Positions 5,358 through 62,789 of a DNA stretch of 64,000 nt are shown in pieces. The position numbers and the translations under genes are program-made. The first letter of the stretch is position 1. Each line of letters begins with the position of its first letter. Origin of the DNA: Oikopleura dioica (Eukaryota > Animalia > Chordata); assembly GCA_907165135.1 (NCBI GenBank), contig OU015567.1:15686001-15750000 (forward strand). Direction: 5' to 3'. The notes under the pieces are model-generated. The model was not told where the DNA came from. It worked only from the letters and a program-made list of their open reading frames with translations, and made no database searches.

Positions 5358-7224
5358 TTATTTAAGGATTTTTATGTTCCAGCGGACATAAAAGTTGTTT
5401 CCTTTGAGTTTGACCATTCCATTTTGATCAGGCGTCAACTTCTTCGCCGAGTTGTAGCGCTTCCCATCTCCAGCGCGAATATCGTCCGCGTCGGCTTGAA
5501 AGTCGACGCGTTTTCCTAAAAAATAAAAATCTCAAATTCAAAAATCAATACCGTTGAAAAGAATCCACATTTTCCAGAAGCCGTCACCGCCGTAGTATTC
5601 GTTCCTCGATTGATGTCGGATTGTCCAGCCAGCTTCCGACACTTCTAAATTTTCGTCCCAACGAAACTTTATTTTGGATGAAAATCGCGTCGAAACAAAA
5701 ATCTTAAAAACTAATAAATGCGATATTCTCCAATTCCTTCAAATTAAACTCCGTCAGTCCTTCTGCCATTGCTTTCAGCACTCTTCGCACTGCTGCTTCG
5801 GAGTGGTTATCTCGGACAGAATAAGAGTCGTTGCCGTTGTAAAATCCAAATCCAATTTTCCAAAGATTGAACTCTTCTTTCGCAAGCGATACTATCATTG
5901 AAGTGATTTCTTTCTCGAGGGATTCGTTTGTCTTCTTCAGCTTTTCATTGTCTTCGATTTTCGCCAGATTCTCCTTGTTCAAATGCTCGTTGATAACTTC
6001 TGTCGTCTCCACCCGATTCTTTCCAAAAACCAAGTCCTTCGGTTGAATTCGATTTTGAAGCTGTTTTATCAAACTGACGATCGAGCGGTGATTCATCAAA
6101 GCTGCTGCGTTTGCTGCCCGTTCTCTGACGTCGATTTTGAGACATTCTTTGATCAGACTTTCCATCGCCGGGAAAACTACTTCTGCAGGTCTTCTTACAT
6201 TTTGAGCGATGTTGTTCATTGTTTGGAAGAGATTTCCAGTTGCGAAAGGGTGTCTTTATTGAGTTTAAGATTACAAGTCTTTTTGAGGAATTTCAAAAAA
6301 AAAACGAATCTTTTATACTGTTCCTGAAAGTGCAGACCATTTGAAAAACTACGCCCATCGCCCAAATATCGTGTTCAAAGGTTACATTTTCATTCCCTTG
6401 AGCTTGAAGACTCTCTGGAGGAAGATATTCCATCGACCCGGCCATTCCGGTATTCATGGTTCCGTCAGTGGGGCGAGAGACGTTGAAATCCGCGATTTTG
6501 ATCTGTTAATAATTTTCCAAGAAGTTATTATTTGGAATTTACCTCTTTCTTGTCGCCAGAAAGAAGAATGTTTTCCGGCTTGATGTCTCGGTGAGTTATA
6601 TTTTCGCCATGCAAGTAGTCTTCAAATCAGTTAGTCGCTTTATCAAAGGCATATTAACTTACTCATAGCAAGAACAATTTGCGCACAAATGCCAAGAGCA
6701 TCGTTTTCAACCCATTCTCCTTCGAATTCACCTCCCTCTGTGAAAATGATTAATAAAATGGCAAGGAGAATGAGCTTTTCTTTACCGTTCTCAAGTTTCT
6801 CTTCGATCAATTGGCCCAAATCACCTCCAGGAGGATATTCCAGAATCAGCCCATGGTATGGGAGATTGTTATAAGCAGAGAAAGAAAAGTTGTCATGAAG
6901 TTTGACGACATTTGGATGATCTTTTTTTCGGGTATATTACTATTTGTCTATTTCAGAGCCTACGGAAAACAAAGTTGCAAACCCTAACCTAGTCGTTGAA
7001 GAAGATCGACCTCCAGCTTTGCTTCTTGCTTCATTTTTTCTTCGAAGAGGCCGATTCCTTTCAGCATTTTTAGCTCATTCCCTATCAAAAGATTTCAGCA
7101 ATAATCTTCCTTTTTCATTTTTACCTTTTTGCTGATCCTTGACGAGCCAGTAGATTTTGCCATCTCTGGGCGGCTTCAGCTCTCTAACCGCCTTATATCT
7201 ATCGTTTATTACAGTTCCTTCCAT
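5358..7224 (-). CDS. Ser/Thr protein kinase (paralog 1) + coiled coil + conserved C-terminal module; multi-exon
   Basis: Spliced translation [138 protein letters not shown] introns plus GA-AG introns at 6254-6323 and 5667-5736. Confidence 0.9.
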
Positions 7225-10200: not shown

Positions 10201-12052
10201 TCGTAATTTATCTGAAAATCGGCGTTATCTTTTTCCGTTTTTGTCGCTTTTGAAATCCGCGAAAACTGGCAGATCGAGGCACGTGATTCGAAAGATAAGA
10301 ACGGACCAGGTTACAAAAAATCATCGGATGCAGTTATGCCACCGCTGACGCCAGACAACTCATTTTTGGTGTTGACGGATTAGATGCTGGAAGATTTGAT
10401 GGTGATAATAGACGTAATGATAAAAATCGTCGCGTACGCCCAGCGAGTCAGAGGTTATCTCTGGAAATTTTTGCAATTACGGAATTCGCTTGAAAAGAAG
10501 CCGCAATTTACAGTTTTTATATCAATTTTTTGTAAAAAATAAGTTATTTTTCGACAATAAATTTCGACAAATTTTGCGTGGACGGCTACTCAGTTGCTGA
10601 TCGGTCGGTTAGCCGAATACAGGCTTCTGATTGGTTGAGAATTTCCTCGCAAAATTTGTCGAATTTTTTTTTTGTCGGTTCAAGACAACCCCCAATGGAA
10701 TGGTTTTTCAAGGGTTAACCCTTATTTATTTAAGATAAAAAGAAAACACAAGAAAGCTAAAATTGAAATTATAATAGTGACGCCCTTATTTTTTCAAATT
10801 AAAAGAACCCTTACCTTAACCCTAACCCTAACTTTGTTTATCATTCTGAGTTTAGATCGTGACACCCTTATTTATTAACCCTAAGAATATGCCTGATATT
10901 TAACCTTGATAGTATTTTTCCTTAAGGGGGAGGTCCACGAGAATCAGAATCTTAGAAACAAATTTCCCGAAAAACCCGATTGTGTAAGTATTTCTTCTGG
11001 AGATCCCTGTTTGTGATTATTTTTTCTACGAAGAAAAAGTGACAAGATTATTGGTAAGACGAAAAAAGTGTTGTGGCAGAATGAGATTATTTCTGGCCTG
11101 AAAAGCCGCAGAGCCTAGAATTACTCTTCCCTCACTTCCTGTAAATTATCCGCTTCGTGAATCGCGCAGAATATCGCAGAAAATTTCTTTTTTTTTTTGC
11201 TTTTTTCAAGAAGCAAAAAAGGTCAAAATTTCATATTGCAAAAAGAATAATTTTGTTTGTTAAAAAAGGTTCCAGAAATCAGTCAGCTGGACCCGCATCT
11301 GCCAAAAGCGGGAATTCGCGGCTCAGGGGAGAGAAAAATAACGAAATTTAATTTTCACCGCTCCGTTATTTTTCAATCCAACTTGAAATTATATTTACCA
11401 AAACAGATTTTATTTTTTTTTCGCTGCTTGTTGAACAATATTTTTTTGAAAAATTTCGCAAGAAAAAATTTAAACAGCCAATTTTTTTAATTTTAGAAAT
11501 TAAGGGTTCTCTTTGCAAATTTTATTCGGGAATTTCGCCAAAAAAACTCGAACTCTTACTTTCTTTTATTCAAAAATTAAGGGTATCTCTTAGTATTTTT
11601 TTTTGAAATTTTCAAAAAATAAAATCTATTTATTTTTTTTTCTAGTTAAAAATTAAGGGTGTCTCTTTGGATTATTTTTTGAGAATTTGTTAGAAAGGAA
11701 TTTTTTTGCTTTGAAAAAGTTAGGGTTTCTCTTTGAAAATCTAAAAAAAAACAATTAAAAGCAAGTAAAATTTTGTTTTCCTCCTTATTTTCCCTTTTCG
11801 CGGAAAAGTCTAAAAAAGTATTTTAGAAGCTGTGCTGAGCTAAAATTTCAGATGTGGCTCTGATCCACTTGATTTTCAAGTGCGCAGCGCGGAGAGAGAC
11901 GTAATCGCGCCCGACAGTAGAGCATCCTGTATTAAACGCATAAACTCGTTCACTCGATATTAAAGTTTCGTGACCTTCTAATTTCGGCTCAACTAGAGTT
12001 CAAAATCTGCCGGAAAAGCGGAAAGGAGAGCAGTCGGAAAACTGGGCTTTGC

Positions 12053-12232
12053 AACCTGTGTAAAAAACCTGAGTCAGGTTCAGAAGAACAAAAATGAAAA
12101 GCCGCGTAATGGCTATTTTTTAATCGAATCCGCAAAATATTGGCGAATCTGTTTTTCGGCTTCGTTTATTAAAAAGCTGCGGCTTTTCATTTTCGCTCCT
12201 GAGAGCCTGACTCAGGCTTTTTACACAGGTTT
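12053..12232. mobile_element. Abundant palindromic MITE family with TIR ~CAACCTGTGTAGAAAACCTGAGTCAGG (about 23 copies in the window)
   Basis: Other copies near 17030, 23362, 23490, 23595, 25150, 28884, 30180, 32122, 32345, 32492, 33230, 35275, 39118, 39375, 44077, 44800, 45730, 47100, 47977, 48283, 57982 and 63325. Many carry internal AAGCCGCnnnGCGGCTT hairpins. Confidence 0.85.
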
Positions 12233-12352
12233 TCAGTAAAAAAATGACTCAAATCTTTGTTTTAGTATTTTAAAGCCAGTTATAAACGAAAAGGAAGACC
12301 ACGTCCATTTTTCCCAATTTTGGTTGGTTGGGGATAAAGACGGAAAAACGTA

Positions 12353-12718: not shown

Positions 12719-13690
12719 TTATTTTCGTATTCTTATATTCCAGCGGACAAAAGACGAATCTCCTTTGTGTTTGACCATTCCGGTTGAATCTGGCGTCAAC
12801 TTTTTCGCCGAGTTGTAGCTCTTCCCATCATACAAGTCAATATCGTCCGCGTCGGCTTGAAAGTCGACGCGTTTTCTTAAAATAAAACTCTCAAATTCAA
12901 AAATCAATACCGTTGAAAGTAAGCCACAGTTTCCAGAATTGCCCGTCGCCGCCGTAGCTTTTGTCGCTTGATTGATGTCGTATTGTCCAGCCAGCTTCCG
13001 TCACTTCTAAATTTTTGAATTGATTAAATTTTATTCTGGATGAAAATCGCGTCCAAACAAAAATCAAAAAATAAAAATGCGATTTTATCCAATTCCTTCA
13101 AATTGAAATTATTTCCCAAGCCAGCTGCCATTGTTTTCAGAACTCGTCGCACTGCTGCTTCTTTGTGGCTGGATCGTTTATCGGGCAAGTCCTTGAAAAA
13201 CCAAGTCCATTGATTTCAGGATTTTCCCCAAAAGAAGAACGAAGATTTTCCATCTCAGCAGTCTTTTTCTTGTTTTCCTTTGAGTCAGTTTCAAGTTTTC
13301 CTACGTACAGGTTTTGGTGTTTTTTCTTCTTCTCTTCTTGTTTCGAAATTCCTTCAGTCGTTTTTGTTATTCTTTCAGTATTATTGTTATGTTTTTCTCT
13401 GAGCTGCTTGAGATCTGCGATTTCTTCTTTCATCTCTTTTAAAAAGCACTCGGTCGTTTTTCGGACATCTTCGATCTGAATATCACGCTCCTGATTCGCC
13501 AATTCTGTGGTTTCTTTGAACATCTCAAGATCAGCGACTCTTTTTCCAATTTTCTATTTTTCTTTTTCAACTCGTTTCTTTCTTGCTGCAGATCGAACGC
13601 AAGAAGTCGAAAGGTCTCATTGTCTTTTTCAAGCTGATCTATTCTCTTAAGAATCGGCTGGATCACAGAATTATTGATTTGGGAACTCAT
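12719..13690 (-). pseudogene. Paralog 4: coiled coil + same C-terminal module, no kinase domain visible; probably pseudogenised
   Basis: Coiled-coil ORFs 13439-13690 and 13137-13523 are followed by RSSHKEAAVRRVLKTMAAG..YGGDGQFWKLWLTFNG..KRVDFQADADDI..VRWNIRIRK*. Single-base frameshifts in homopolymers at ~13543 and ~13198. Both module splice acceptors read AA instead of AG. No HRD/DFN motifs seen upstream; further 5' exons may lie at 13690-14020. Confidence 0.75.
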
Positions 13691-15351
13691 TGCTGCATCG
13701 GTTGTTCCTTCGTTTTTGTAATCTCCAACGGTGCTTTAAAAGGGTCACCGTCTTATATCTTAACCCGTTGCCAAGTGCATCCCCGATGGTACAATCTAAC
13801 CTGAGGCTCGAAATTCAGCATTACTATTGGCGTTTTCATTGTATAAATTATACTGTATAATTTATACACCTTCCGCTCGGCAACGTCTTAATCTTGGTAC
13901 ACTCTTATCAATTCCGAAATTCTGATGGGACATCTCTTGTAGCTTTTTTATTAAGAAGTATTAATTTGGCGGAGACCCAATCTAAAAGAAATAACGGATC
14001 GATTATCTTCGTTTGACATTTTGAAAAATATTAGCGAGTTTGGCTGTTCTCTAGCTTTTGTGAGAGGCTAATAAAATAATGCCAAATATTATGGCCAACG
14101 AATGAGTTGGCTATAAAATTAACGTGAAACTCCATCTGTAGAAAACTACAAGAAACTTACAAGACCAAAAACACAGCTTCAAATTTACCAACAAAGCTCA
14201 AAATCGCCAGCTGATGAATTTGATCGTTTCCCCACCCAAAAGCGCCAGAGCCAATTTCGCGAAAGCGCTGGCTTCTTTGTTTCTAGCGCTGTTTTCCAGT
14301 GTTGTGCACTCTCCAAGACACCTGACCTGTTTTGACCTGCTGTTGTGCGTTAGAGAGACTTGCTCGCTTTAGAAGCTGTTTTGAACAAAAGAAAAAAGTT
14401 TGTGAAACTTTTAGTTACTGATGATGATCCTTTGATCGAAAAGCTTCTAATAAATATACATAAGTACAAAAGAAAAAAGGCTTTTTTGAAAACGCTTCTT
14501 TTTTAGTTTATTTTGAACAGTTTTTTTGACAGTCAGATTTTTTGTTTTGTTTTGTTTTGAAGTTTTGTTTGTTTGTTTTTTTTCGTTTGAGAGAGGAATA
14601 ACAGTATTTACAGTCGCTGCTGGCTATTTTCGTCGCTTTTAAAAAGAGTTCCTTTAGTGGATCGAAAATTATAAAATTAGAAAGTTTAGTTGTCTGACAA
14701 AGTCGATGAAAATCGCCGGCTAAGTCAAAAATCAACGGCTGTAAAATTGTTTATCGTTCCGAAGCGCCTTCTAACCACCTCAATGCATGATAAAACGCTT
14801 AACTGCTCCCACCCCAAAAATATCAGCAAGCGTTTTTGCTCGCAAAAGAGCCCAGGGAATTAGGCTATCGCACGATGAAAAACGGGGCTTTTTCATAACA
14901 GCGTTTTTTAGAAAAATTCGATAATAGAAGGGAAAGTTTACCTTGTTTAAAAATATCAGCTACAAAATTTGCGAAGGAGGCGAATCGACAGCTGATTGGC
15001 TTTTTCCAAATCAGCTCACTCAGCCAGCTCAGCTCACTCAGCTCAGCAAATTTGCAACTCTGCTTTTATGGTCTACAGGTGGCGCACTCTATTTATTCAG
15101 CCAATCAGAAGAGAACTAGCCACCAGCGCATTTTTATTGGCTAACTCTCTTCTGATTGGCTTGATATATGAATTGCGCCCTCTGGTGGCCATTATTGTTT
15201 AGTTTGGGAAACGAGCCAATCAGTTGTCGATTAGCCGCCTACGTAAATCTTGTCGCAGAAATTTTAGATACAGTAGAAGATACCCTTAATTATCGATAAT
15301 TATTTTAAGATAAGTTTCGAAAAATGTTTTCAGGCCAAAAATCACTTTTTA

Positions 15352-17946: not shown

Positions 17947-18447
17947 TTAAAGTCGCGCGCGGCTACTTTTTCAAAAGTTAAATTAAGGGACTCCCACCCT
18001 TAAAAATTACGGTAAAAATTCTTTGAAAATCCATTTATTTCATAATTAACTGATAAAATTTCTTGCTCTCATTTTTTAGAAAGCAATTATTGATGGGAGG
18101 CCCTTAATAATCTCCAGTAAGTAAGATGTATCTGTTATTTCCTCCGTATAACTCTCAGATCTCGATTGCGTCCTGAATTTCTCGCGCAAATTCTGAAAGA
18201 TGCGAACACGAATCTTTGAATTTCCGAATTTGTCAAAATTCAGCTTACGTGACACAGACAGTCCACTTTTTTCAAGTCCGCTCTTTTTTGAAAAGCGAAA
18301 AATCGATGAAAAAATATTCCAGAGCTTTCCTGTTCAGATGTCTTTATGCAGCGAGGGGAAGCTACACCCAGTGCTCGGCGTGACGCAGCAGCGGGAAAAT
18401 TGTCGGCAACGTTGGGTAACTGATTCCTAGAAACGACGATTACTTAA

Positions 18448-18841
18448 TATGGTGGTTTTATACTGAAAGTAATTGGAACACGGGAATCAATCTCGAATGT
18501 GTTTATTTACCCTGATAGGTGTGAGCAGAAAATAATAAAATATATATATTATATTTTATGTTATACCTGTGAAGTCAGGGAAAAGAATGATAAAATTATA
18601 GGGGTACAGTCGTTTTTATAGTGTAGGACACCACCCATCGGTGGCACGGACTTAGACTTGGTCGTATGAACTCGGCGTTGGCCATATCGCCAACGCTGGA
18701 AAAGAGAGGGGCGAGCTGTCAAGGTATGATGGAGTGAAAGCCTTGGCGTTGAGCGCGTCACGGCTCACTGAGCATAATTACGTTGACCACGCGCGCTAGA
18801 ATTCCATATTTCGGAGCGAAAACAGTAGGAAAACCACTACA
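18448..18841 (-). repeat. 3' LTR
   Basis: Identical to 22248-22641; preceded by the PPT on the minus strand. Confidence 0.92.
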
Positions 18842-21800
18842 TATTTTCCCCTTTTTATTTTTGAAGCGAAGCGTCCGTTGAGCGTAGAAATTTTTACTGT
18901 TCTTCAATTAAGTCCCAAACATTTTCTGGTAGAGAATTGTGCTGGATGGAGTTTTCGACTTGTAGAGATTCCGAATGTGAAGTTTCTGCATGATCGATTC
19001 GGTAAGTCGAGTAATTGTGAGCAAGATCATCTGTGAAAATTTTGATGTGAGTCCTCGCATATTCGAGCTGGTCGGAAAACGATTTTGAATCGGCTTCTAG
19101 AAATTTGAAAGCGATCCTTGAGGTGTAATATCGTTTTTCATAGATTGTTTGAAATTTTTTTCACCAATTCGATGCGAGTGTTTTTATCGACCAAAAGCTG
19201 ATAGAGAATTGCTGTCTCACTTATCCAGTTGAGCAAACTGTCATGATTTTCAAAAAGCAATTCCTGGAGGTGGTTGATATCAAAGTGAAAGTGATCTTTA
19301 AGGGACTTAGCTTCGTTTTTCAATTCTTGCAAAAAGTCGAGCAGCGATTGCAAGTGTCTTTTGAAATTGAATTCGGTAAGAAGTGAATTGGAATAGTGAT
19401 ATCAAAGAGAGCAGGAATGATAAAGCGTTGAATGAGTCGCTTTGGAGGAGCGTTGTTGAGCAGGAAGAAATCATTTTGAAGAAAGGTCATTTTCGCGTTT
19501 TTCTCTTCTAAAAATGAGTATTGAACCAACCAGTACTCCTTTCAGAACCATATTTTTTGAGGCTAAAATGCGCCATCGAGTGTATCTTCCGGACGTTGTG
19601 AAGTCATTCCGATGTCTTTTCTTGTGATTTTTCGTGACCAGTGAGGAGTAGTCAAAGTCGTGAGTTGGGCCTTTCGTGATGGATATTTTTCTGTCTACTT
19701 CTTTTCCCCTTTTTATTTTTGGGCGAATGATCTTCACGAGCAGGGGATCGTTAATGAGCGCCACTGTGATTCGAGCGGTTATCTGTGTTATGAGAACATA
19801 AATCCACAGAGGCCTGCATGAAAACTTCGTAATAACGATCTGGTTGAGCATTACCAGTAAGCTGGATTCCCATTTGAGCTTGATCGGGGAAGTTAAATTT
19901 TTCTTATGAGCCAATTTCTAGTTGTGCATTGAATCGCCGAAGTTGTGAGGAACCAATTAACCAATTGACATCGATGTCGTGTGAGCAGGGCTTTAGACTA
20001 CAGAGAGAGCGAGCAATCCAGTTATGAGTAAACGGTGGCTAGATAATGGGAACGCATATCTGAGCACCACCACGTCGTGAATCTGACGATTTGTGAGCGA
20101 GATAGTCGAGCAGCTATCTGTGAATCAGGTCGAGTTATGAGCAAAACTTCTAGACCATTAAAGGATTAGTCGAGCAGCTAATCACAGGACAACACTATCG
20201 TCGTGAGCGGAGACGATCTTTCCAAACGTTGTCGTGAGCTGAGTCATCTCTATCATTTGGCTTTTTATGATCTTTATGACTCGTTAACTTCTTTTCATTC
20301 TTCTGAGCAGGAATGATCTCATCTCTATCAACAAGGAGCGGTTGATCTTTATGAGAATTAATTTCAGACTTGTTCTTAACTTCGTCTTTTAGGACTTTCC
20401 CTTGTGATTCGGCCACGTCATCTTCCTTGATAATTTCTGTTCTGTTTAAGGCAGTCTTTCGTTTGAGCGGTCGAATCAGACTGATATGACGCCGATATTT
20501 TTCTTCGTAATTGGATATTTGATTGCAATCAGTTTGTGCATAATCGACAAGATATATAAAGACTTTTTCTAAGGGTTATTGAGCGAATATTATGTCCTTA
20601 TGAGCGAGCGACGAAGTTCTTTGAGCGGTAATATCAGATGCATATATCTCACGAGCAGGAGATTGTTCTGATTCCTTTTCATGATTGACGAAAAACCTTC
20701 TGAGCAGTTGCACTGGCTAATGATTTCTAGCGTGAGCAATGTGCAAGTTTCGTTTTCAATCGTCAACGTGCGATTATTGGAGAACAAGTTGATCACGAGA
20801 AAAGAGAGCTTGTGATATTTGAGTTAAAAGCTTCTCGTGAGTAGACAGGCATTGCGAGCAGTAGCCATAATTTGGATGTCCAGTTTTTTTTTAGCTTCTC
20901 AGAGCAGAGAAGGAATTCTTTGTGATCCATCTTTTTAACGAATTCTTATTAATAAGCCTTAATTTTGGAGCGATTTATCCAATATTCGTGAAGACATTTT
21001 ATCGAGCAAATAATCATTTCCACATAACTCGTTGTTATTATTGTTTTCTTCACCAGAGTCATTATAATATATCTCTTTTTTTTAACGTCTGATGAGTTGG
21101 GATCGTTAACAAGTATGGCTTCATTTCGGAGATTGAGCGAATTATCTCCGACTGTTATATTAGAGCGGGTCCATACCAACCATTATTGGACATGTGACTT
21201 TCTGAACGACGAGCAGGTTCAGCTTGACTTTGGTGATGAAGATAAAAGTGTGGCCTCAATGAGTGAGTCGAGCGTTCTCACAATTAAAAATTTGCACACT
21301 TTTGTGGCACATTTGACGGTTCTTGATGAAAGGTGCAAATAGAAGAGCGGAAACATCTGAGCGGATGCTTGTTCTACTGCAACCAAAATTGATGAGCAGC
21401 ATATTGGAGTCCATTAAGCAAGATATTTAAAACCAAATTTGTATTGCGCTCGTGATGAAATTTCCGTCATTTTTCTCATCATAAATTTTTTCGTCATTCG
21501 TTAATTTTTCGTCTCATAATTTTTGATATCTTTTTTTATATCATTAGATGCAATAAAGACGATTTTTCGAGCTTCGAGCAGAGCTGTGAATGTTTTGAGT
21601 TTGATTGATCATCAGCGGCGATAATATTCTGTTTTTCAGGATAGATCATTCTGTAGCACGCTGAGCAATATTTCGAAGATTGAGTAATAATTTTTCCCGT
21701 TTGAGCAGTTCCAAGAGCCAAGGTTGAGCTGTTACGAACCGTACACGAATTTCGCCATCTCTTTGGAATGAATAAGTATATTCAAATCTTAACTTTTCCC

Positions 21801-22247
21801 AGAAGGGTTATTACAATGAGGGAACTTTGATTTTCTTTTGTCAGGATTCGAAACATGACGACCTTGATGATTTCTTCTTAGATGAGCGATCATTTGATTG
21901 GTAATTTTCATGAAGTACACTTTGATTTTAAGTTGTCGTTTTCATGGATTTGATCATCAGTTTGATTTCCGGTTGAGGTCGGGGATTTTTGAAAGCAATG
22001 AGATTCCGTTTTTTCGAATTAAAAAAAATATCAACTTTTTCCGGAAGTAAAACTTTTTATCATATTTATCGAGAAAATCGGGTAAAATTGCCTAAGGATT
22101 CAAAACAATGCCCATTTTATCGAATAAATAAAGATATATAAGTATATATTCGCGGATCGTCATTGATAATTTCACGGGAAATTTATCTCTAGTTTCTCTT
22201 TTATATCTCTCTTGTTGGGCGTACCGATTATTTCAGTCACCAAAATA

Positions 22248-22641
22248 TATGGTGGTTTTATACTGAAAGTAATTGGAACACGGGAATCAATCTCGAATGT
22301 GTTTATTTACCCTGATAGGTGTGAGCAGAAAATAATAAAATATATATATTATATTTTATGTTATACCTGTGAAGTCAGGGAAAAGAATGATAAAATTATA
22401 GGGGTACAGTCGTTTTTATAGTGTAGGACACCACCCATCGGTGGCACGGACTTAGACTTGGTCGTATGAACTCGGCGTTGGCCATATCGCCAACGCTGGA
22501 AAAGAGAGGGGCGAGCTGTCAAGGTATGATGGAGTGAAAGCCTTGGCGTTGAGCGCGTCACGGCTCACTGAGCATAATTACGTTGACCACGCGCGCTAGA
22601 ATTCCATATTTCGGAGCGAAAACAGTAGGAAAACCACTACA
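22248..22641 (-). repeat. 5' LTR
   Basis: Starts TGTAGTGG and ends CCACCATA on the minus strand; followed by the PBS. Confidence 0.92.
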
Positions 22642-24719
22642 TTAAGGGTATCCATGGCATTAGGAAGTAAAATCAAAACTGTGACTGGCCAATAATTTTT
22701 AAGTGAAGACCCTTAATTAAGCCAAATTCAAATCAGCAACTCGGATTTTCTTTTAAATTTCTTTCAAAGTTATTATAGTGACACCCTTATTTCATTCCCC
22801 AAATCATAGTTGAAACAAACTCATAATTCAAATAAAACATCTTTCTCAAATTTAAGCGGGAAAAATAAAGGTGTCACTCAGTTTAACAAAGCTTGAAGAA
22901 AAATCTATAATATGAAGGGTATCCCCTTAGAGGGTAACCTCAGATTATGTATTTTCCCTCTAACTTTGACCCTTACTTATCCCCTTATTTGATTCGCTGT
23001 TTTTTTTTTCAGTAGCTCAAATAAATTACTCTTTCGTTGAACCTCGTTGAAATATAAAATATCAAAAATTGCTCAACTGCGTTTCATCTCTTTATTTGAT
23101 AAGTGATGAGTTTAGCGATGAAATTTATCGAATTTGCTCGCAGCCGGGCGCATTTCTCACAGCCCTGAAATTTGCGTTTTCGTTAGAGGGTTCTTCTAGC
23201 GCATTAAAATTTAGCTTTTTGCCGGCTTGTGAAAATAGCGATTTATCTTTTGAACTCTTCTTCGAAAGTTTGCACTTTTTAGATTTTCGTAATCTAATTT
23301 TTGGCTTTATAAAATCGGGGTTAAGATCTTTTCGATACCTTTTCTTAGAATCAGGGTTCGAAAACCTGTGTAAAAACCTGAGTCAGGGTCCGAGAAGAGC
23401 TTGTTTTCCGTCAGCACCCTGACTCAGGTTTTAGCACACATTTAAGAGCCCATATTCTAGCTTCTTACAGGTTCGAACCGTTCGACAGCTTATGTGAAAA
23501 CCTGAGTCAGGCCTTCATAAAAATCGTATGAATCCTGACTCAGGTTTCTACACAGGTTGTCGAGCCTCTAAGAAGCTAGAACCTGAAATCTAAAATCTGT
23601 GCTCAAAACCTGAGTCAGGGTGCTTTCAAAGCTGCGAAACTTCAATAAGGACCCTTACTCAGGTTTTGTACACAGGGTGCCGAACTCAGCAAAAACAGTA
23701 CTGCTTTAGAAAAAGGACTTTCCTTCACGAAGCAGAAAAACCGCAGTGTTCGACCGCGAAATCAGCAAAAAGTTCACCGCTCTCAAATTTTCCTTAACAA
23801 AAATATTTTTCTAAAAACTGGCGAATTCCGATCGGAAACATGGCTTTTTCCATTTTTCCGCTGGATTTTTTGTTTTTGTTAATTTTTAGAATTTGGTTGA
23901 ACCGCACGTTTAGTTTCAAACCGAGCTGAAATTTTGGAGAGGCCGAAAATTGGAATTGGCAAAACAGAAAAAGTGGGGAGTTAGTATTTTCGCGGCGGGA
24001 TTTGTTATAAGAACAGGATTTAGAAAATCGACGGTTACTGTTTTTGCTTGTTTCCAGAATGTTATTTTTCCTCGCAGATCAATCTATCGTCGTGACACCC
24101 TTATTTCTCCGAAAAAAGATGAGAGTATTTGTGTTTCTTTTATTTGGAGAAATCAGGGTGTCACTCTGGAAACAAGCAAGTAAATCGCACGCAATAACTT
24201 TAAACTGATTCTCGGTGCATAGTCTTTTGACACCCTTATTCACTTCAAGGTGACCGAAGACAGGATAAATAAGGGTGTCAATATGCTATCCCTATCGAAA
24301 AAACCCTAGATTTTCAGTTTGATAACTTAAATTTTGATTTTTCCGTGTGACAACATTATTTTCTCTGCTAAAAAACTATTTAAGAAAAAAAAATAAGGGT
24401 ATCACTTCACTAGTCAGTCTTTAGAAGCTTTTGTAGAAAAATATCATTTATTTCCGAAGACTGGCTAACGAAGTGATACCCTTATTTTTTCCATTTAAAA
24501 GTGTTCCATTGAAAATAAAGTGGAAAAAATAAGGGTGTCACAAGGAAAAATCTAAAGGGCTGATAACTGAATGAAAGATAAATTTCGAGTTAAGTAAAAA
24601 ATGAGATCATTCAAAAACCACGTAATCAAGCCCTTTAGGTTCTTTCCCGCTCGTCAAATTTTAGTAAGTCGCAGTTGAAATTCAACCCCCGAAATACGTA
24701 AAAGCCAAAATTCGTTACC

Positions 24720-27700
24720 TGGTATGAACAGTTCTCGATAATGCTTGATTTGAAGCTCCTGCGCGAGAGCTTGATTGATCGCTTCTTTTTCCTGGTCAGC
24801 GCCGTCGCTAGAATTTCAAATCAAGATTTAGCCGTTTTTTCAGAAAGAAAAAACATCTCGGACGAGAGACAGTTCGAAAGAAAAGCGACAGTTTTACACC
24901 TTTTCTGAAGGAATTATCATTTTGGATGAGACAGCCGAAGCAAAGAAATTCAAGCAAACAAACAACTTTTTAGAAATCAGGGAAAAAAGTTCAAATCTTG
25001 ACCAAAATTAATAAGCCGCTTGCGGCTTTCAATCTGCTTTTTAATACAAATTTTCATCTTTACAAAAAAGCCGCAATCGGCTTTTTCACAAATTTTCGTA
25101 TGTTGTAAAAACCGCGTGCGGCTTTTTCAGTTCATTTTATTTTTGATTCCGAAAACCTGTGTAGAAAACCTGAGTCAGGGCCTGAAAGATCTTCAGTGAA
25201 AAGCCGCGTAGCGGCTTTTAAAACGGAGCCGCGAAGCGGCTTCGCAAAAATTAGAAAAGAGATTGGAATACTTATTTTGCGAAGCCGCTTTGCGGCTTCG
25301 TTTCTAAAAGGCGCTACGCGGCTTTTCATGAGAATTATTTTAGACCCTAACTCTGGTTTTCTACACAGGTTGCCGAGCTTAGTTTCTTTATATTTTTTAA
25401 AAATCATTAAAATTGTAGTCATCTTTGTTCTGCTAAAATCAGCGAAATTCAACCCCAGTTTTCGTTTTTTCAAGCGTTGTTTTACAGAAGTACTTTGGTC
25501 CGTTGCGAAGTGAAGAGGTTAAAATTAGTTGACCGATAAAACGCGAAATAGAAAGCCGAAAAACGTTCTTTAGAAAAAGAATTATAATTATTCTGGTTAT
25601 TTTTACCTGCGAAGCTCGACGGGCGTATTGTTTATTCGACGGGGCAACTTGTCGACTTTTTATCGGTTCAAAAGAAAGTTGCTTTGTGGAACTTATCAAT
25701 TCGCCGCGGCGCGAATAATTCGCGCTTTCTACATCGCCTATCTTGTCCTTTTTCGTTAGAAAGACGCGTTTTTCTTTGTTTGCTTAAACTTTTGTTCTAA
25801 AGAAAAACACATTTTCAATTCGAGGAACTTAAGGGTATCACAAGCGAAATAATAACTTGTCAAAATTTTAAATCATAGAAGATGAACAATTATAAAACAA
25901 AAATAAGGGTGTGCACTTAAGAAATAAATGATTCCAAAAAGTCCTTTAGGGATGGTACACCCTTATTCCATTTTACTTTTTTTCACAAAAATTACTCAAA
26001 AACTTATTTTAAATAAAATTAGGGGCTTGCTCCTATAAAAATAACGCCAAAAATTAAGTTTAAAAATTAATGAGTAGATACCCTTAAAATTTTTGATTGG
26101 CAATCAAATTGATTGTGATAGCCAGGAAAAGCTAGAAACTCGTTTTTATTTAAATATTTTGCATAAAATATTTTTTCTTGAATTAAAAAGTTCATTTTCG
26201 GAGGGAAAAACTTAAGGGCATCCCTAGAAAAATGATGAAGCGTCCAAAGTTGACATAACCGTGAAAACTAAGAGCGCATCATTTGTAAAATTAATTTTGA
26301 GGAGCTCGAAAACTTTGTCTTCTTACGAGTTTATTCCGGATTCAAACGGCAATCGAAAATTGTTCAACTACGAAGAGCAATTAATTCGAAAGAAAACGTT
26401 TTTAATTATAATAATTTGTCTGTTCGTCAGTCCTCATCACTAATTGCTGCTTAGTAATTACGAGTTCCAGCTGATTAGGTAATTGAATTTGATTAAATGG
26501 CCAGGAAGCTAGCTTATTGTTCAATTAACCGGTATTTTTGATCGACAGATTAATTACGTGGGCGATAAACTAAATTCTGATTGGTCGAAAAATTTTAAAA
26601 AGTATTCTGATTGGCTCGAAATCTTGTAGTTTCGACAAATTGTAAAAACGGAGAAAATTCGCTTTTGAGCCAATCAGAATCCTGCATTTTGTTTTTGAAC
26701 CAATCAAAACCCAGATAGCCGCCAATGCATAGTATGAGCAATTTTTACAAAAATTCAGAGAAAATCTGACGTTTTTGCTTTTTAATTATTCTTAAAAATA
26801 ATTTAACAAAAATTATTACAGTTAATTCTTTTCAAAAAGAATTCCGGAGAACAGTCAATTTTGCTCAGCTTCTTTTTTAGTTGAGCTATTTTTATTGCTC
26901 CCTTGTTGGTATTCTCGAGATGCCTTTCTAAAAGCGCCCCAGAATGGCGATTGTCATTTGGCTTAAAATTCTGAACCGATTCCTTCGTGGCTGGAAAATG
27001 ACGCCGACAGATTCCTGCTGACTTTTGAGGCTGAATTTGGGGATCGAAAATCGATTACTTTGTATTTTTTGGGAGAGATCGAAAACCGCAGATAGGGCGA
27101 ATCAGGCATATAAATTTTGTTCGAAAACCCAAAGCGAACGCGAAGCGAAAGCGAAAAATTTTTCCAGCCAAAAAGCGAAGCGAAAGCGAAGCGAACGCCT
27201 ATCTTGCACAGCGAAGCGAAAGCGAATTCGCCAAGCGAAAAATTCGCCAAAAGCGAAAAATTCGCCAAAAGCGAAAATTCGACAAGAGTGAAAATTCGCA
27301 AAAAGCGAAAATTCGCCAAAAGCGAAAATTCGCCGAAAGCGAAAATTCGTTGAAAGCGAAAATTCGCCGAAATTGAAAGATAAATTTGAATAAAACGCGA
27401 TCTAATAAGATGAAAATTCGGCCCATTTTTCTAAGTTAGTTATATGACACAGTTTTGGAACGCCCAGAAGCTGAGCTTTCATTTGAGCCGTTTCCCGGTA
27501 CTAAAAAATTCGATTGAAGAGATCGAGTTCCGATTTCGGATCTTCCAGTCCCATGAATTGCCTTGACCCCTTCTTCATGGCTTCTTCTGGGCTTTCTAAA
27601 ACCGAGAATTTTTGAAGCCCTAAGTTAGGGCCCCTAATTAAGACTTTAATAGGCTGCCATTGATGATTGTAGCCCAGGCTCTGGCAGTCATTTTGAGCTC

Positions 27701-31121: not shown

Positions 31122-34046
31122 TATTCCACAAGCCAGTTTTTTTCCACCAAAGAAGCGGGGGTGAATAAGAATTCTGAATTTTTATTGATCTAAAAATTCT
31201 GATTTCTGATTGGTCAGAAAATCATAACAGCGCCATCTTCTTGATTTGTTTTTCCACAAAGAAGATTTTCTCAGAAAAATGGGTTTTATGGAAAATTTTC
31301 TTGAAAAAAAATTGGCCAATAAGAAACGGAATTTTTTGGGAAAATATAAGATCGGATTTTTGGGAATTTCAAAATTCAAAAATGTTTCTTTTTCTTCGAT
31401 TTTTTTGACGGAACTTTTAGCTCAACTAATCCCGATTTGCAAAATACTGTCAGAAAAGTTCCGCTGTATTCAAAATAGCCAGCACTGCTGATTTGGTACA
31501 ATTAATGTGAGCGCAAAATAATTATCCGCCCGATTTTTTGAAAAATAAAGAATTTATTCGACCCCACCTTGATTTTTTTAAAATGAATTGTTTCAAAAAT
31601 GCTCTTTTGTTTTGAGTTTTTAGAAAGGACTTAGAAAAATGAACATTTCCGAAAAATGGAAAAAAAAAGAAAAAGATGTTCCGCGTAATCCGGTTCCTAG
31701 ATAACCGCTAAGGACGTTTTTAGAGCTTTTTTTTTGAGCACGTTTTTGGGGAAGTTAAAAATAAGGGAATAACCGTCTTTATTGCTAGATAAGCTGACCA
31801 CCCCCTTCGCGAAATTTATCAAATGAAGTCACTTTTTTTAAAAATATTTTGAATTTCGAAAAAACGCCCCTCAAGAAATGTATTTTTTGGTGACAAGTCC
31901 TTGGAGGTATGACGCTGCGGCGAAAACGGATAGCTTATCCATTGACGGCCGTTTGCAAATATTTTATAAAAGTGAAGGGGCGAGCCCAGTTTCCAAACAA
32001 CATTAGCAAGGAGATGAGCTGCTCGCTCCCCTCCCCAAGTAGCTACTTATCGCTACCACTGCCATCTCCACTAGGGCACGAAAAAATACGGACTTTGCTG
32101 GTTTTTTCTTGTTTTAAGAGCTCGGCGACCTGTGCACAAAACCTGAGTCAGGGTACGAATAAAGAAGTTGGCTTTTCCAAAATTTTTAAACAATATTGAA
32201 ATTAGCCGCTTTGCGGCTTCGTTTTCAAAAAGCCGCAAGGCGGCTTTAATTGATATTCTATTTGTACCCTGACTCAGGTTTTCTTCACAGGTTGCGGAAC
32301 TTAGCTTTTAAGCTGGCATTGCTTTACCCTCACCTTCTAGATTGGGCAACGTGTGTAAGAAACCTGAGTCAGGGTCAAAAAATATCGAAGCGGTTTTTTA
32401 TTGGAGATCTTTTCAACCGTGACTCAGGTTTCTTACACAGGTTGCCGAACTTAGAAATTATGGTGATGGTAAAGTAAGTTAAAAAAAGCTTAAACCTGTG
32501 TAGAAAATCTGAGTCAGGGTAAGAAAAGAGCATTTATTAAAGCCGCCTTGCGGTTTTTTTTAAAACGAAGCCGCAAAGCGGCTAATTTTAATATTCTTCT
32601 TAAAATTTCCTTTTTCGTACCCTGACTCAGGTTTTCTGCACAGGTTGCCGAGCCTAGCATAATCTTTCTCCCTGAAAGTCTCACTTTTTTCACACTTCTT
32701 TCGCCTGAAAGAATAAAACCAAAAGCCCCTTAATCATGCGACCTCTAATCATTTGAACTTATAAATCGAAAGTCAAGTCCCTTGATCATTAATAAATGCT
32801 GGCGTAAATACTCGACCCTCGTCGCCTCATTTCAAGAATGCGCCAAAACATCAATCATTAGTAATGATTCATTACACAGTGGATTAGAAACCTCAAGACA
32901 TTTTTGAATTGAACTTTTTTCGCCGCGGAAAAGAATTAAAAAGGCCAAATATTTTAAAAATTAATAAATTATAATCCGAATTGAAGTCGTCAGCCTTGTA
33001 AGAAATAAATACCAGCTACGTAATCGATTATTTGAGTATTTGGGATCAGCCAAAGCAGGGAGAACTTTGGGACGGGTAACAGGACATTTACGGGACTTGA
33101 TTTCAAATAAAACGAAAAAAATGAAAAAAGGGGTGGCCATTTTAACGGATTTTCTATTAAGAAAACTGGTTTTTGACTCGAAAATCCGTTAAAAAAGCGG
33201 TTTTATAGAAAATTTTGGTGGGAACTGAGCTCAGCAACTTATGTAGAAAACCTGAGTCAGGGTCTGAAGAGCTGAAATGAAGAACTGCGTAGCGGCATTC
33301 AAAATTAAAGCCGCAAAGCGGCTTCGCAATAAATCCATTTCTATCTATTTTATGGTTTCTTGCAAAGCCGCTTCGCGGCTTTGTTCTGAAAAAGCCGCGA
33401 TGCGGCTTTTCATTTGAGGTCTTTCAGACCCTGACTCAGGTTTTCTTCTCGACCCTATTTTAAATTTTTTTCGAAAAATAATTGGCCGTCTCCAGAAAAA
33501 GAAAAAAAGGAGGTTGAAAAGCGATCCGCCAGTTTGAAAGCGATAGAGAGTAAAATTACTTACGAAAATGGTGCCGGTAATTGATTTCTTGAGCTGTGTG
33601 GAGCTCAGATTCGGGAGAAAGTTGATGCCGCCGAGTTGACTCTGATTGCAGGATTTTCTATGTCTTTCTAGGGTTGATTCCAATGTACAAGGGAAATACT
33701 TTTCAGTGGGAGTGATACTTTCATTGATCGTGTTATTTTAGAATTTACTTTTTTGAGGGAAAAAAAAAACCAAATTTTTTTTACGAAGAAAATCGTAAAA
33801 ATCGTTGATGGCGGCTATTCATGCTCTTATTTGACCCCAAGGCCTGATCAGACTTCTGATTGGCTAAGATAAATTTTGCATTATTTTCCCTTTTTTCGAG
33901 ATATAAATCCAATTTGGCCGAGTTTTGAATAATCCAAATTCAAAATTACAAATTCAAAATATTCAAGTGCTCTCAAAATCATCAAGAAATTAGAAACTTC
34001 CGTAAAATTCCCTTTTCCGAAATTTCCCCGAAAAATCTGACCTTAA

Positions 34047-34633: not shown

Positions 34634-36329
34634 TTAAATTTCCCAAATTCCAACAACCAATCTTATCAAAAAACGACTGTAACTTAAATTCTAGCGCTAG
34701 CTGTCATTTTTTGTCATTTCTCATGTTTTTTTTCCCGAATTTCTCGTCTCCAATCGAGTTTGTTTTAAAATTTAAAAACAGGTGCTTGTCAGAAAAGTTC
34801 ACAGAAAATTTTAAAGCAACTGTATTTCTCAAAAACCTGGACGATATTTTGAGAAATTACCTTTCTCAAGTACGTTTGGGACCCTTTTTTCGAGAGTCCT
34901 TTTGGCTAATTCGCCGCTTTGGTCTCTAATTCGTCGCGGAAACTGGATGAACGTCTTGAACTCTTGAAACCAATTTTGGTTTTTAATCTCGCGCCTTATC
35001 CAAGCGCGGTGGAGTTAGCTCATCCTTTAAATTTCCCCATTAATCTCGATTCCTCCCGACTTTGCGGCTCTTTCAGCTTTAACGACTACCCTTTTTCTTC
35101 TCCTGTTTTCCTCACATGCAAAAATACTACCCAACTCCCCTCGCAGCAGCAGGGGAAAAAAGCTGATAACAAAAGTGCTTTGGGGGAATACTTACGAAAA
35201 AAAATGATAAGAAAAAAATTCGGAAAAATATTATTTCTTATAAACTATTTTTCTTGGCTCGACAACCTGTCTAGAAAACCTAAGTCAGGTTCTGAAAAAG
35301 TTAAGACGAAAAGCCGCATAGCGGCTTTAAAAAAAGAAGCCGCAAAACTTAAAAATAGATGAGATCACAAAATTTGCAAGGCCGCTTCGCGGCTTCGTTT
35401 ATAAAAAAGCCGCTTTGCGATTTTTCTTTTTAGCTCTTTCAGGGCCTAACTCAGGTTTTTCACTCAGGTCGCCGAGCCCTGAATCATTTCCTACTGATTA
35501 TTTTTCTCAAAACTTTTCACGGTTGTTTCCTAAATTTACGCCTCCACGTCGTTTTTCCCTTAAATTTCTCGCGTTGGAAATCTCCCGGACTTGACTGTCA
35601 GCTCGTTGGAACAAACGTGTCCGTTCCGCCGTCCTGACAAAGGTCGGAAATGTCCTCCCACGAGATTCTCCAGCGTTTTTTTATCAGCCCAGATTCAACC
35701 TTTCTTTTTTTGGCTGTTGCTCGTTTTTTCTCGTTTGCGTACTTTTTCGTTTCGATAAAGGAATTAGTGTCACGTTTCTAAAGATAAAAAAAGACCCGTT
35801 TTTGGTTTAAAAAAAGAACGGTGACGAAATAAGATATTTTTTGGACTCAAAAAAGACGCGAAAATGTTATCGCCAAAAAGCCACATGGGAAAATAGGCGA
35901 TAAGAAAAAGCCAATTTTCGTAACTTGACTTCGATTTTCTAAAGATAATGTCGTTTTCAGCCACTTTAGTTCGGTAATTTCTTCACTTTCTATTTTTTTC
36001 TATTTTGCCCTAATCTAAGAAAATCCTCAAGTGGGGATTCTGAGGATCGAGCAAAGTGCCAAAGCGCGAAACAAGTTTTTAACTGGACCAACGAGGAACA
36101 TCTTATTTTACTTAGTAATCGGGGTTTGAGCAGTTAATGTCCACTGAAAATCAAATTGTAAGTAATGACTGGTATTTTTGGAGAAAAGAAGGTCAAAAAT
36201 GAAATTCGAACCGACCCCGGCGAAGTGGAAAATATTTGCTTTGGACATGAAAATAGACGCTGTATCGCATTTTTTCAGCATTTTTCTGAAAAATCACCGG
36301 GTAGAGAAGTTTGAAGAAAAGTAGGGAAA

Positions 36330-38111
36330 ATGTCGATGATCGATACGGTCATTAATGAGCGATACAAAGTGATAGAAGAGATCAAACCGCCTAGAGATGG
36401 GAAAATTTACTTGCTCGTGGAGGACTTGAAAGAAAGTAAGTAGAAACGCAAACAGTATCTAACTCTTACAATTATTGAAGAAGACGAATACGGCGATAAT
36501 TTTAAAAGAATGCTGAAAGGAATATTTCTTTTTGGGGAAAAAGAGCGCGAAGAGGCAGGGCTAGAAGTTGATCTTCTCAAGCAACTTGTTAAGGTTCCTA
36601 ATAATATTGCTTTTACCAGTACATTTATGTTGGTAAATAAAAGTGAACCGACAGAAAGACCACCCAAATGTTATAAAGCTCTATGACGATTTTGAGTTTA
36701 CAAGTCCGGAGAATTATCAATATCACGCGATGATTCTCGAATATATGGAAGATGGGAATTTGGCTGATTATTGCAAGAAAAAACTTGAAGAAGATTCAGA
36801 CGGAGAGGAAGAATTTGCGCTGACTGTTTCAGCTCAATTGGTTTGCGCGTTAGGTAAGTCGTGATAAACGAAAAAGAAAGAAATTATAAAGAAATGATGC
36901 ATAATAAGTCGTTTGTCATATTCAAATTTTTCAGATCACATTCACGATCAAAACATTATCCACAGAGATGTCAAGCCGGAGAATGTAATGCTGGATTACA
37001 AAACGGTATCAAATCGTCATTTTAGGCTAAGCTAGCAGATTTCAACATCTCTCGTGCAGCTGAAGGAACAGTGACAACTAACGTCGCTGGAACACCTGAT
37101 TATTTACCCCCGGAAGCGATTAAAAATCCTGAAAGTGAGAAACTTTGCTTTCGAAGAGACATGTGGGGCCTCGGAATCATTTTTCAAATGCTTTGCACTT
37201 TTAGGATCAGCTCAAAATAAAGATAATGATTTTCTTCTTTGAAAAATATATTTCAACTGAGAAAAGGCATCCCTTCGCCGGCAAAAATTCGTTTGAGACA
37301 ATGATGAACATCGTTAACAATAAACGAACACCAGCTGAAGTAGCTTTTCCGTCGATGGAGAGTCTTATCAAGCAATGCCTCGTCCCGGAAATCAGCGAAA
37401 GAGTCGAAAGTGCATCCGCGCTGATGAAACATCCGTCTCTTTACAGCCTGATCGAGCAGCTCAACAATGGAATTGAACCCCATGATTTGGAATTTGGAAA
37501 AAATCGAGTAGAAACTTTGGAGATTGTCAATGAATATTTAAAAGATGAAAGCGATGAACTCAAGGAGGAAAAATCATCTCTACAAGATCGACTCGAAAAT
37601 CTGTGGAAAATTGGGATTGGCCATTACTACGGTTTGGACAGTGACGACGTGCGAGATGAACACTCAGAGACTGATGTTCGAAGCATTCTAAAGGCAATCG
37701 ACAACGGCGGCGTGCGAAAGATAAATTTGAAGGAATTGGATAAAATCGCATTTTTTTAGTTTTTTGATTTTTTTTTCGATGCTATTTTCATCCAAAATAA
37801 AGTTTGTAAACGACAAAAATTTAGAAGTGTCAGAAGCTGGCTGGACAATCCGACATCAAACGTGGCACGAAGACTACGGCGGCGACGGCTTCTGGAAAAT
37901 GTGGATTCTTTTCAACGGTATTGATTGTTGAATTTGAGATTTTTATTTTTTAGGAAAACGCGTCGACTTTCAAGCCGACGCGGACGATATTGGCTATGGA
38001 ACTGGGAACAGCTACAACTCGGCGAAGAAGTTGACGCCGGATTCACAAGGAATGGTTAAACTCAAAGGAGACTCTGCTTTTGTCCGCTGGAATATTACAA
38101 TCAGAACATGA
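36330..38111 (+). CDS. Ser/Thr protein kinase (paralog 2) + coiled coil + conserved C-terminal module
   Basis: MSMIDTVINERYKVIEEIKPPRDGKIYLLV..RMLK..DHPNVIKLYD..MILEYMEDGNL..HRDVKPENVML..AKLADFNISR..GTPDYLPPE..DMWGLGIIF..RHPF..VRWNITIRT*. GA-AG introns at 37205-37266 and 37733-37802. Confidence 0.9.
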
Positions 38112-52623: not shown

Positions 52624-54830
52624 ATGAGCAGTTTTGGCATTCTTGGGCTGATTGCGTTGTTAAATGGCCTGCAAATTATTTGCCAAACACGAGGTAACTT
52701 GCATTTCGCGCATTGTTCACCGCGTGGCGAATTTATATAGATTCGTAAATTGTCATGCGATTCGCTGAGCGGGCTTATTTTTACAGTTACGCGTGATAAC
52801 GATCGCTTTATGCTCGAAATGGACCAATAAGAATAATATTTTTTATTGAATCTTCATTTCAGCCAATAAAAAGAGATTTTGCGAGCTTTGACGAATCAAA
52901 ATTCGCAAAAATCCAATAACTCATTTTTATTGGCCACTCGCCTAGCCAATCAGAAATCAATCTCCCGCCGAAATTTCTTTCTAGCCAATCAGAAGTGATT
53001 TTCTGGCTTTGACCAATCAAAGCTTTTAGAATTAAAACTCGAAATTGTTGATTGGTCGAGTTCAAAAATTGCAGTTTCTTATTGGCTAGCAAAAGAAATC
53101 TTCGAAAGTGGCAGTTTTTCTCGTCGATTTTTGAACTTTTTCATTACGAATTTATTTATTGTTTTAGGGTATAGGAGTATATTGCCAAAACGTCCAAAAC
53201 GACGTGTCATTTTTGCAAAAAGGTTCAATGTGGCGTAACATACATCTGCGACCAGCAATGGCTGGTTTTGAAGAACCGCGAGGAGTAGTTCCTTCGTTGG
53301 GAGTGATCACTCATCGACCGCAGATCATTTCAACTCAAATTTGTAATTCCTGTTTTTTGGCTAAATAGCTTTTTGGAGCAAATACAAGTTTTTTTTTCTA
53401 CTTTCAAGGACGTGGAATTCTTGTTAATTTACTAGTAGAATTTGGATTATAGTCGTAGCTAAATTTTTCGAATCGAAAAGACTTAAGTTGATTTGACCAA
53501 TTTAGCAATTAAGGGTTAAGGATATAGCCTTGAATATTGAACTTTCGTAGCGCCGAAACCTTGCTACGAATTCATTTGTTTTTCAAAGTATCCCTACCTA
53601 AAATCCATCGTAGATTTCGAAAATGTCCTTACTTTTAGTACTTTCTAGGGTGTTAGTACCTAAAAATCGACTTTTAAATCAAATAGACCGTCGTTTTCCG
53701 AAAATTTCCATTAAAAAGGTAAATCTGGATTGATGATATGAAAGATTGAAGCCTTCTCTCCAATCTAGCGGAGGATTTTGTAAAAATATTGAAAATTACG
53801 GCTTCTAGGAACTGGTTTTGATTGTACTTCGAAATGGAGAGTTGCGCGCGCAGCCAATGAGAGCGAGGGGAAAATCTCACTCAGCCATCGCTCACCCAAT
53901 TTTACACGAGAAATATTGTCGACAGCTTGGACGAAAGCGAACTGAGATTTTCCCCTCGCTCTCATTGGCTGCGCGCGCCACTCTCCATTTCGAAGTACAA
54001 TCAAAAACCAGTTCCTAGAAGCCGTAATTTTCAATATTTTTACAAAATCCTCCGCTAGATTGGAGAGAAGGCTTCAATCTTTCATATCATCAATCCAGAT
54101 TTACCTTTTAATGGAAATTTTCGGAGAACGACGGTCTATTTGATTTAAAAGTCGATTTTTAGGTACTAACACCCTAGAAAGTACTAAAAAGAAGGACATT
54201 TTCGAAATCTACGATGGATTTTAGGTAGGGATACTTTGAAAAACAAATGAATTCGTAGCAAGGTTTCGGCGCTACGAAAGTTCAATATTCAAGGCTATAT
54301 CCTTAAGCGAATCGACTTGACTCAGAATTTCTTTTAGTCGAATGAGTTAAAGAATTAGTCAACAAAAAAATTTTTAGTCAAAAATATATTTCTAGCCGAC
54401 ATTTGATTTTGCGATTTTGAATATTTTGACCAAACTCGGATTTTTTGACTAAAATCTAAACAATTTTTTGACTAAAAATTTTGATTCTTATGGACTAAAA
54501 TTCAAGTTAATTTATTGTATCTTTTAGACGACTAAAGACTTACAAAGATTATCTACTTGACATTTTGGAAAAGCTTTCGGCTCAAAATTAAGAGAATTTT
54601 GATTTTCAGCTAGGATCCAAGAAGCAGGGATCTCAAGGACGTGGAAGGGAGTGTAGAAAAACCAAGGCTGAGGTCGGCATCTCTTCCCGAGCAAGAAGGA
54701 CCGCAAGAGCATGTGTGCCCAGGGACACACCGCCCAGACGTGGATTAAGGGGATTACACCAGAATCACGACCGAGTCTTGACATAATCAAGCACAATCCG
54801 CGCTGACCCCATGATTAAACGGACAACCCG
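52624..54830 (+). CDS. Possible small secreted-protein gene (signal-peptide-like first exon); downstream exons unresolved
   Basis: MSSFGILGLIALLNGLQIICQTR|GTAAC at 52624-52693; GC-richer exon-like blocks at ~53168-53300 and ~54610-54830. Confidence 0.25.
53520..54302. mobile_element. Kolobok-like foldback MITE (~360-bp arms), copy 1
   Basis: TTAA TSD; termini GGATATAGCCTTGAATATTG / CAATATTCAAGGCTATATCC; near-perfect palindrome with a ~60-bp spacer. Confidence 0.9.

Positions 54831-60640: not shown

Positions 60641-62789
<2,149 letters not shown>

Follow-up and report, generated by a model that had tools for sequence, protein, structure and literature searches.

A kinase-linked module family in Oikopleura dioica with a homogenised frame and diversified loops: candidate intracellular recognition proteins

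A stretch of 64,000 nucleotides (nt) of the Oikopleura dioica genome (contig OU015567.1, positions 15,686,001 to 15,750,000 of the forward strand; hereafter the window) holds four loci, designated A, B, C and D, which end in the same C-terminal module. Judging from the sequence, a handful of loop codons in this module are driven to change, and they are set in a frame that has been homogenised between copies independently of the kinases encoded upstream. The family to which these loci belong comprises about 40 loci in O. dioica, mostly unannotated, and most of them couple a predicted protein kinase to a small sandwich module. We give roughly an even chance to the explanation that this is a lineage-specific intracellular recognition family locked in an arms race, its foreign ligands (for instance proteins of viruses, retroelements or parasites) changing fast.

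The four loci are present where a preliminary description of this DNA had placed them, aligning mutually at about 81-85% across 390-500 nt, and all the variable patches quoted there were located in the sequence. The kinase said to precede the module is found in A, C and D, but not in copy B, which is kinase-less and broken by frameshifts, a 7-nt deletion and alterations of both module acceptors. Gene A was modelled by template-guided splicing as a stop-free frame, the donor of its module intron 1 being set at 5736 by RNA-like contigs of paralogues (spliced junction, sequencing run X4). The features, in window coordinates, are as follows.

5358-7224, minus strand: gene A, an intact kinase-coiled coil-module gene of about 482 amino acids, with nine exons and eight introns (two GA-AG).
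6070-7224, minus strand: Ser/Thr kinase domain of gene A, with the catalytic Lys, the HRD..N loop, DFN instead of DFG, and PPE; the glycine-rich loop is absent.
5854-6069, minus strand: linker and predicted coiled coil of gene A, from sequence; a long helix (H23-56) appears in a single-sequence model of paralogue P0013.
5737-5853, minus strand: exon-1 part of the gene A module, with a GFG motif, a variable patch and a helix; it shares its ancestry with the kinase.
5806-5823, minus strand: N-terminal variable patch of gene A (module sites 11, 12, 15 and 16), different in probable alleles from other samples.
5667-5736, minus strand: module intron 1 of gene A, 70 nt of GA-AG type, whose ends form a weak stem; kept between lineages.
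5552-5666, minus strand: module exon 2 of gene A, strands 1-4; selected codons 5663-5658 and 5606-5601.
5516-5551, minus strand: module intron 2 of gene A, GT-AG, 36 nt, core of the homogenised tract; missing from the spliced database proteins P0003 and P0013.
5358-5515, minus strand: module exon 3 of gene A, strands 5-8 and stop; selected codons 5480-5472 and 5402-5394.
12719-13701, minus strand: copy B, a broken, kinase-less coiled coil-module; introns 13095-13029 and 12910-12877.
36330-38111, plus strand: gene C, kinase-coiled coil-module, with module introns 37733-37802 (GA-AG) and 37918-37953; kinase exon borders approximate.
60641-62789, plus strand: gene D, kinase-long coiled coil-module, with module introns 62407-62477 (GA-AG) and 62596-62631.

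Evidence for loop selection came from site models fitted, with our own implementation, to the 129 codons of 17 intact modules. The comparison of M8 with M8a gave twice the log-likelihood difference (2dL) of 132.6, with an omega of 3.8 on 16% of sites, and 14 codons exceeded 0.95 (module sites 11, 12, 15, 16, 41, 42, 60, 61, 91-93 and 117-119). Each module exon was positive when tested alone, and the kinase control gave a 2dL of 0. Here such statistics alone prove nothing, because simulations under neutrality, on mosaic trees and with rates varying by segment, yielded M1a-M2a values of 26-227 against an observed 151, and M1a/M2a and M7/M8 were set aside as sole proof of selection. With silent-rate classes included, the test was still positive (2dL 32.6, omega 3.3; a statistic not calibrated by simulation). 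In a cross-validation in which variable columns were chosen in eight copies and measured in the other nine, differences at the three codon positions were p1 0.64, p2 0.60 and p3 0.48, and the non-synonymous excess (pN-pS) was +0.21, a value reached by none of 200 neutral data sets simulated on mosaic trees with varying rates (at most 0.098), in which third positions varied no less than first and second. Multi-nucleotide mutations, which were left out of the simulations, would not be expected to spare third positions either. The predominance of first- and second-position changes noted in the preliminary description is thus in excess of chance, and the diversifying selection on short loops proposed there is upheld, save for the QN/ST/SQ/QD patch, which is not a significantly selected site. 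The selected sites are rich in Trp, Tyr and His, which make up 25% of their residues vs 9% at other sites, and no pair of copies is distinguished by fewer than 10 of the 14 sites.

The frame around these loops has a history distinct from that of the kinases. Four-fold silent distances fall from 0.53 in the kinase to 0.40, 0.24 and 0.16 in module exons 1, 2 and 3, and intron distances from 0.48 (kinase GA-AG intron) to 0.13 and 0.075 (module introns). Among the four loci, the module introns are indeed nearly identical, as first described (pairwise identity 84-90% for intron 1 and 91-100% for intron 2), and a stretch of 36 nt is identical in all four. The scaffold, said to be invariant, is nearly so in the 11 codons after intron 2 (four-fold distance 0.056) but not throughout. 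Likewise, among A, C and D the kinases are far more diverged than the modules at silent sites (0.67-0.70 vs 0.15-0.21), but only slightly more so in protein sequence (0.37-0.46 vs 0.30-0.36). The exon-1 distance between two copies can be predicted from the distance between their kinases (rho 0.70, p 2e-6), to which the distance of the tract running from intron 1 to the stop bears no relation (rho 0.00). The tract tree is rejected by the kinase data in the approximately unbiased (AU) test (p 1e-4). The kinase tree, for its part, is accepted by exon 1 (p 0.24) and weakly rejected by the tract data (p 0.03). These correlations and tree tests therefore delimit the unit exchanged as the last ~380 nt, starting at the end of exon 1, and together with the silent distances they substantiate the claim that the homogenised scaffold is decoupled from the kinases. 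C and D have 95 identical nt in common around intron 2, though their kinases differ at 68% of silent sites. Fine-scale mosaicism within the tract is likely yet unproven, since the pairwise homoplasy index (PHI) is significant on all sites (p 0.001) and not on silent sites alone (p 0.73). Gene conversion is the mechanism that we infer for the exchange; repeated recent exon replacement would give the same look.

The window samples part of a larger cluster. The genome searched comprised 64,281,565 bases in 19 contigs, in which C5 (16,158,756 bases) is chromosome 2 and C4 (14,533,022 bases) chromosome 1 of O. dioica OKI2018_I69 (PMC8008620); protein matches carry names in OKI2018_I69.chr2. A DNA search found about 22 module copies at C5:15.55-15.86 Mb, on both strands and 0.3-0.6 Mb from the chromosome end, and a profile search at least 17 further diverged loci on C1, C2, C4 and C5, several of which adjoin the same kinase C-lobe. 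Cluster copies beyond C5:15.75 Mb were read within 1.5 kb around each module; of the dispersed loci, one was read. The frame is open in 17 of the 19 full-length cluster modules (the exceptions, B and a copy at 15.847 Mb, carry frameshifts) and a kinase precedes the module in 14, the other five (15.591, 15.653, 15.655 and 15.813 Mb, and B) having a coiled-coil N-terminus of their own type and no kinase. Further copies are partial or carry stops or insertions, and the arrangement reads as a birth-and-death cluster near a chromosome end. Two module copies are split by insertions (C5:15778852-15788401, about 10 kb; 15821874-15822986, about 0.65 kb), a 2.1-kb insertion lies in the kinase GA-AG intron of the 15.582 Mb copy, and three equal-scoring isolated matches to kinase residues 1-55, in alternating orientation, mark amplified 5' gene fragments at C5:15553031-15557365 (L031-L032).

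The family is largely hidden from protein databases. Four annotated relatives were retrieved, and in three of them (OKI2018_I69 models P0011, P0012 and P0014) the module is missing; two, g8377 and g8398, break off at or near a kinase intron whose type in most copies is GA-AG. Model g8373 exits at a GT within the coiled coil, and g8398 carries an unrelated fused N-terminal region. No description of this family was found in the literature searched, nor was the combination of kinase, coiled coil and MATH-like sandwich in the libraries or literature searched. A deep protein search found no relatives outside Oikopleura, which is weak evidence because the query was a 41-residue exon; bacterial matches P0001 and P0002, together with P0008, were discarded as repeat artefacts.

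Copies from other samples vary in the same manner. Marine metagenome contigs L046-L054, evidently from another Oikopleura lineage, carry the same module (with a kinase upstream in one) and vary at the same patches, and they form their own clade (support 0.94-0.99), as expected under concerted evolution. The divergence of the Okinawa lineage from the others dates to about 25 million years ago (PMC11067885). In the DNA run X3, the sole contig across 5757-5883 among the matches listed shows 21 differences from gene A in 201 nt, module codons 8, 11, 15 and 16 being among those affected, and overlaps by 30 nt another contig that matches the unique coiled-coil region of gene A exactly; X3 kinase contigs differ by 0-4%. 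It is probably an allele of gene A that differs at selected sites, a recent duplicate being the alternative.

Non-canonical introns account for about 11% in O. dioica (PMC8008620), and GA-AG introns are known in this species (PMC7072748). Run X4, for which the label DNA is a guess, behaves as RNA: depth drops in introns, and contig 14 skips two kinase introns. In three X4 contigs the end of module exon 1 is followed immediately by exon 2, which makes intron 1 GA-AG, and spliced modules occur in databases as P0003 (from a marine catalogue) and P0013 (annotation g4538). The X4 contigs support splicing of the family. Since they are mostly from paralogues, it is the family, not gene A, that is shown to be expressed; RNA depth is low. 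In run X11, from another sample (window 5668-5701), three poly(A) RNA reads join the 3' half of intron 1 to a relative's exon 2, a possible case of intron retention, and at C5:15812859-15813353 (L010) and in L046 both module introns are in frame and stop-free, so that an unspliced transcript keeps an open frame.

Intron 1 is more conserved than silent sites, also between lineages, where it is kept about twice as well (p 0.23 vs 0.41-0.47; window 5667-5736, minus strand, and its equivalents vs L046-L048, L050 and L054); in L051, a distant paralogue, it is diverged. The conservation between lineages is beyond the reach of conversion inside one lineage. Its terminal stem is paired in 93% of cells, with three pairs changed on both sides, a covariation inflated by relatedness, and single-sequence z-scores are only -0.4 to -2.2. 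The simplest guess is that the constraint reflects a role in GA-AG splicing. Long-range pairing with the start of exon 3 was rejected, as no compensatory change was seen, and so was an origin from an introner or miniature inverted-repeat transposable element (MITE), all 21 intron 1 matches lying inside module copies of the cluster.

An AlphaFold2 model built on P0013 predicts a helix followed by eight strands in an antiparallel beta-sandwich (predicted local distance difference test, pLDDT, 83; predicted template modelling score, pTM, 0.76); a single-sequence model of its coil plus module is poor (pLDDT 52). Queries were single exons or database proteins, spliced models serving in local scripts. 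The MATH/TRAF-like fold suggested earlier is tentatively supported, the best structural matches being, with moderate scores, the MATH/TRAF domains of SPOP, USP7 and SIAH. In sequence, no match to Pfam MATH/TRAF or to MATH sequences in the PDB was obtained at E up to 10; searches of Pfam, PDB sequences and the ESM Atlas with the module gave nothing usable. A ricin-type beta-trefoil, which would take three repeats, was rejected: the model is a sandwich, and the likeness to ThreeFoil, at 7 bits per repeat, lies in a single hairpin of 28 residues. This hairpin, at module residues ~57-85 (alignment A5 positions 78-105), is probably convergent.

The upstream domain scores well above the Pfam Pkinase cut-off of 31.7 bits in P0012 (140 bits) and P0013 (99 bits). 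Those of A, C and D are predicted kinases from sequence, keeping the catalytic Lys, HRD..N, the metal-binding Asp (in DFN) and (P/A)PE; the glycine-rich loop GxGxxG and DFG are absent. The nearest solved kinases, NEK1, PDK1, DCLK1 and SLK (each about 82 bits), share the common Pkinase residues, and none is a clear orthologue. The kinase is under purifying selection, and the encoded protein has no signal peptide and no membrane segment or anchor.

Elsewhere in the window, direct repeats of 396 nt (18447-18842 and 22247-22642; 100% identical), resembling long terminal repeats, flank a decayed interior. A repeat pair of about 790 nt (53516-54311 and 58239-59037) matches in both orientations (91% and 88%), as in a palindromic or foldback element, and a MITE-like element of about 220 nt with inverted ends occurs in more than ten copies (e.g. 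12023-12234, 25150-25385, 33223-33450, 35254-35482 and 63296-63540).

The same signature has been reported for NLR-B30.2 (PMC4852459), finTRIM (PMC3137616) and MATH-BTB (PMC4334554) proteins. By this analogy the pattern is typical of pathogen-recognition proteins: a loop-diversified C-terminal recognition domain spread by conversion over different effectors, in a family that belongs to none of the three. Teleost NLR-B30.2 and finTRIM/btr/trim35 genes (PMC4852459, PMC3137616) are likewise clustered multigene sets with a C-terminal beta-sandwich bearing selected hypervariable loops, and conversion has spread that domain across groups so that its tree conflicts with that of the effector domain. 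The Oikopleura family differs in lacking NACHT, LRR, RING and B-box, in having a Ser/Thr kinase as effector and in belonging to a tunicate, not a fish; its sandwich matches MATH/TRAF, and neither NACHT, RING-B-box nor B30.2/SPRY is among the Pfam or structural matches listed. Compared with MATH/TRAF proteins (SPOP, the USP7 N-terminal domain, SIAH and TRAFs), the module is shorter (~95 vs ~135 residues), shows 7-10% identity and no Pfam MATH match, varies in the loops between strands, a location not obviously that of the canonical peptide groove, and is fused to a kinase. Nematode and plant MATH-BTB and F-box adaptors (PMC4334554) share birth-and-death expansion and selection confined to the substrate-binding domain, and have been proposed to detect foreign proteins; MATH-BTB proteins couple via BTB to cullin ubiquitin ligases, whereas the Oikopleura output is a predicted kinase and its scaffold is homogenised down to the introns.

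If the family does recognise foreign ligands, the coiled coil would oligomerise the protein as in TRAFs, and the four variable loops may, going by strand order, come together in a single binding face at the pole opposite the coiled coil. Ligand binding would then cluster and activate the kinase or bring it onto its target, kinase-less copies acting perhaps as partner sensors or decoys. Gene conversion would hold the frame uniform and reshuffle loop variants, for which broken copies may still be donors. Oligomer, ligand and signalling all go beyond the sequence pattern and are put forward as proposals. Allorecognition is less likely, the animal being solitary and dioecious.

Drive and reproductive genes show positive selection, tandem amplification and conversion just as typically, and the proteins might instead recognise fast-evolving endogenous partners (drive elements, toxin-antidote partners or gamete proteins) in testis or ovary. 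We consider such a germ-line conflict unlikely: a restricted tissue would suit the low RNA depth, but the cluster is on autosomal chromosome 2, not on a sex chromosome (PMC8008620), and a protein with neither signal peptide nor membrane anchor is not one of the gamete surface. Nor does docking of host substrates without any enemy, each kinase paralogue having its own specificity in the manner of SPOP or USP7 and undergoing bursts of selection after duplication, seem likely. MATH domains are peptide-docking modules and the kinases are constrained, which would fit, but fixed host substrates would yield stable orthologues, and instead the copies of each lineage group together, the module is swapped between unrelated kinases, the same sites distinguish probable alleles and a large number of copies are defective. 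That relaxed loops escaping conversion merely keep an older divergence, mistaken by site models for selection, would account for the size of the M1a-M2a statistics; it is very improbable, being largely refuted by the cross-validated codon positions, and it is also at odds with the silent-rate-aware test. Least credible is programmed or somatic diversification, in which the conserved introns and a repeated CG-rich motif of 8 nt would signal a directed exchange of cassettes or templated mutagenesis. In its favour, the introns are better conserved than silent sites, intron 1 also between lineages, 23 of the 25 occurrences of the motif in 224 kb lie within modules, and there are kinase-less broken copies and partial ones. 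Against it, variable columns show no adenine bias (A 24-39%), no template-like copy or linked reverse transcriptase was found, 8 of 19 introns carry a mutated motif with no compensating change, and the constraint on the intron can be put down to a stem required for GA-AG splicing. A diversity-generating retroelement was rejected specifically, all four bases being common at variable columns and no A-rich template copy being present.

Returning to foreign ligands as the favoured explanation, the immune set of O. dioica is stripped-down, with one Toll-like receptor (PMC8609888) and one TNF-family gene (PMC12843592). It is possible, although we hold this wider proposal more doubtfully, that the family represents an undescribed class of chordate intracellular immune receptor, coupling a kinase directly to an antibody-like variable domain of MATH origin. 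Together with kinase-less partners, a repertoire of about 40 genes, shuffled by conversion, would then take the place of scarce conventional sensors. The family may bear on how O. dioica recognises pathogens, through some 40 loci with the signature of variable receptors, and it offers a direct test: 14 named codons and natural loop variants, in a laboratory animal.
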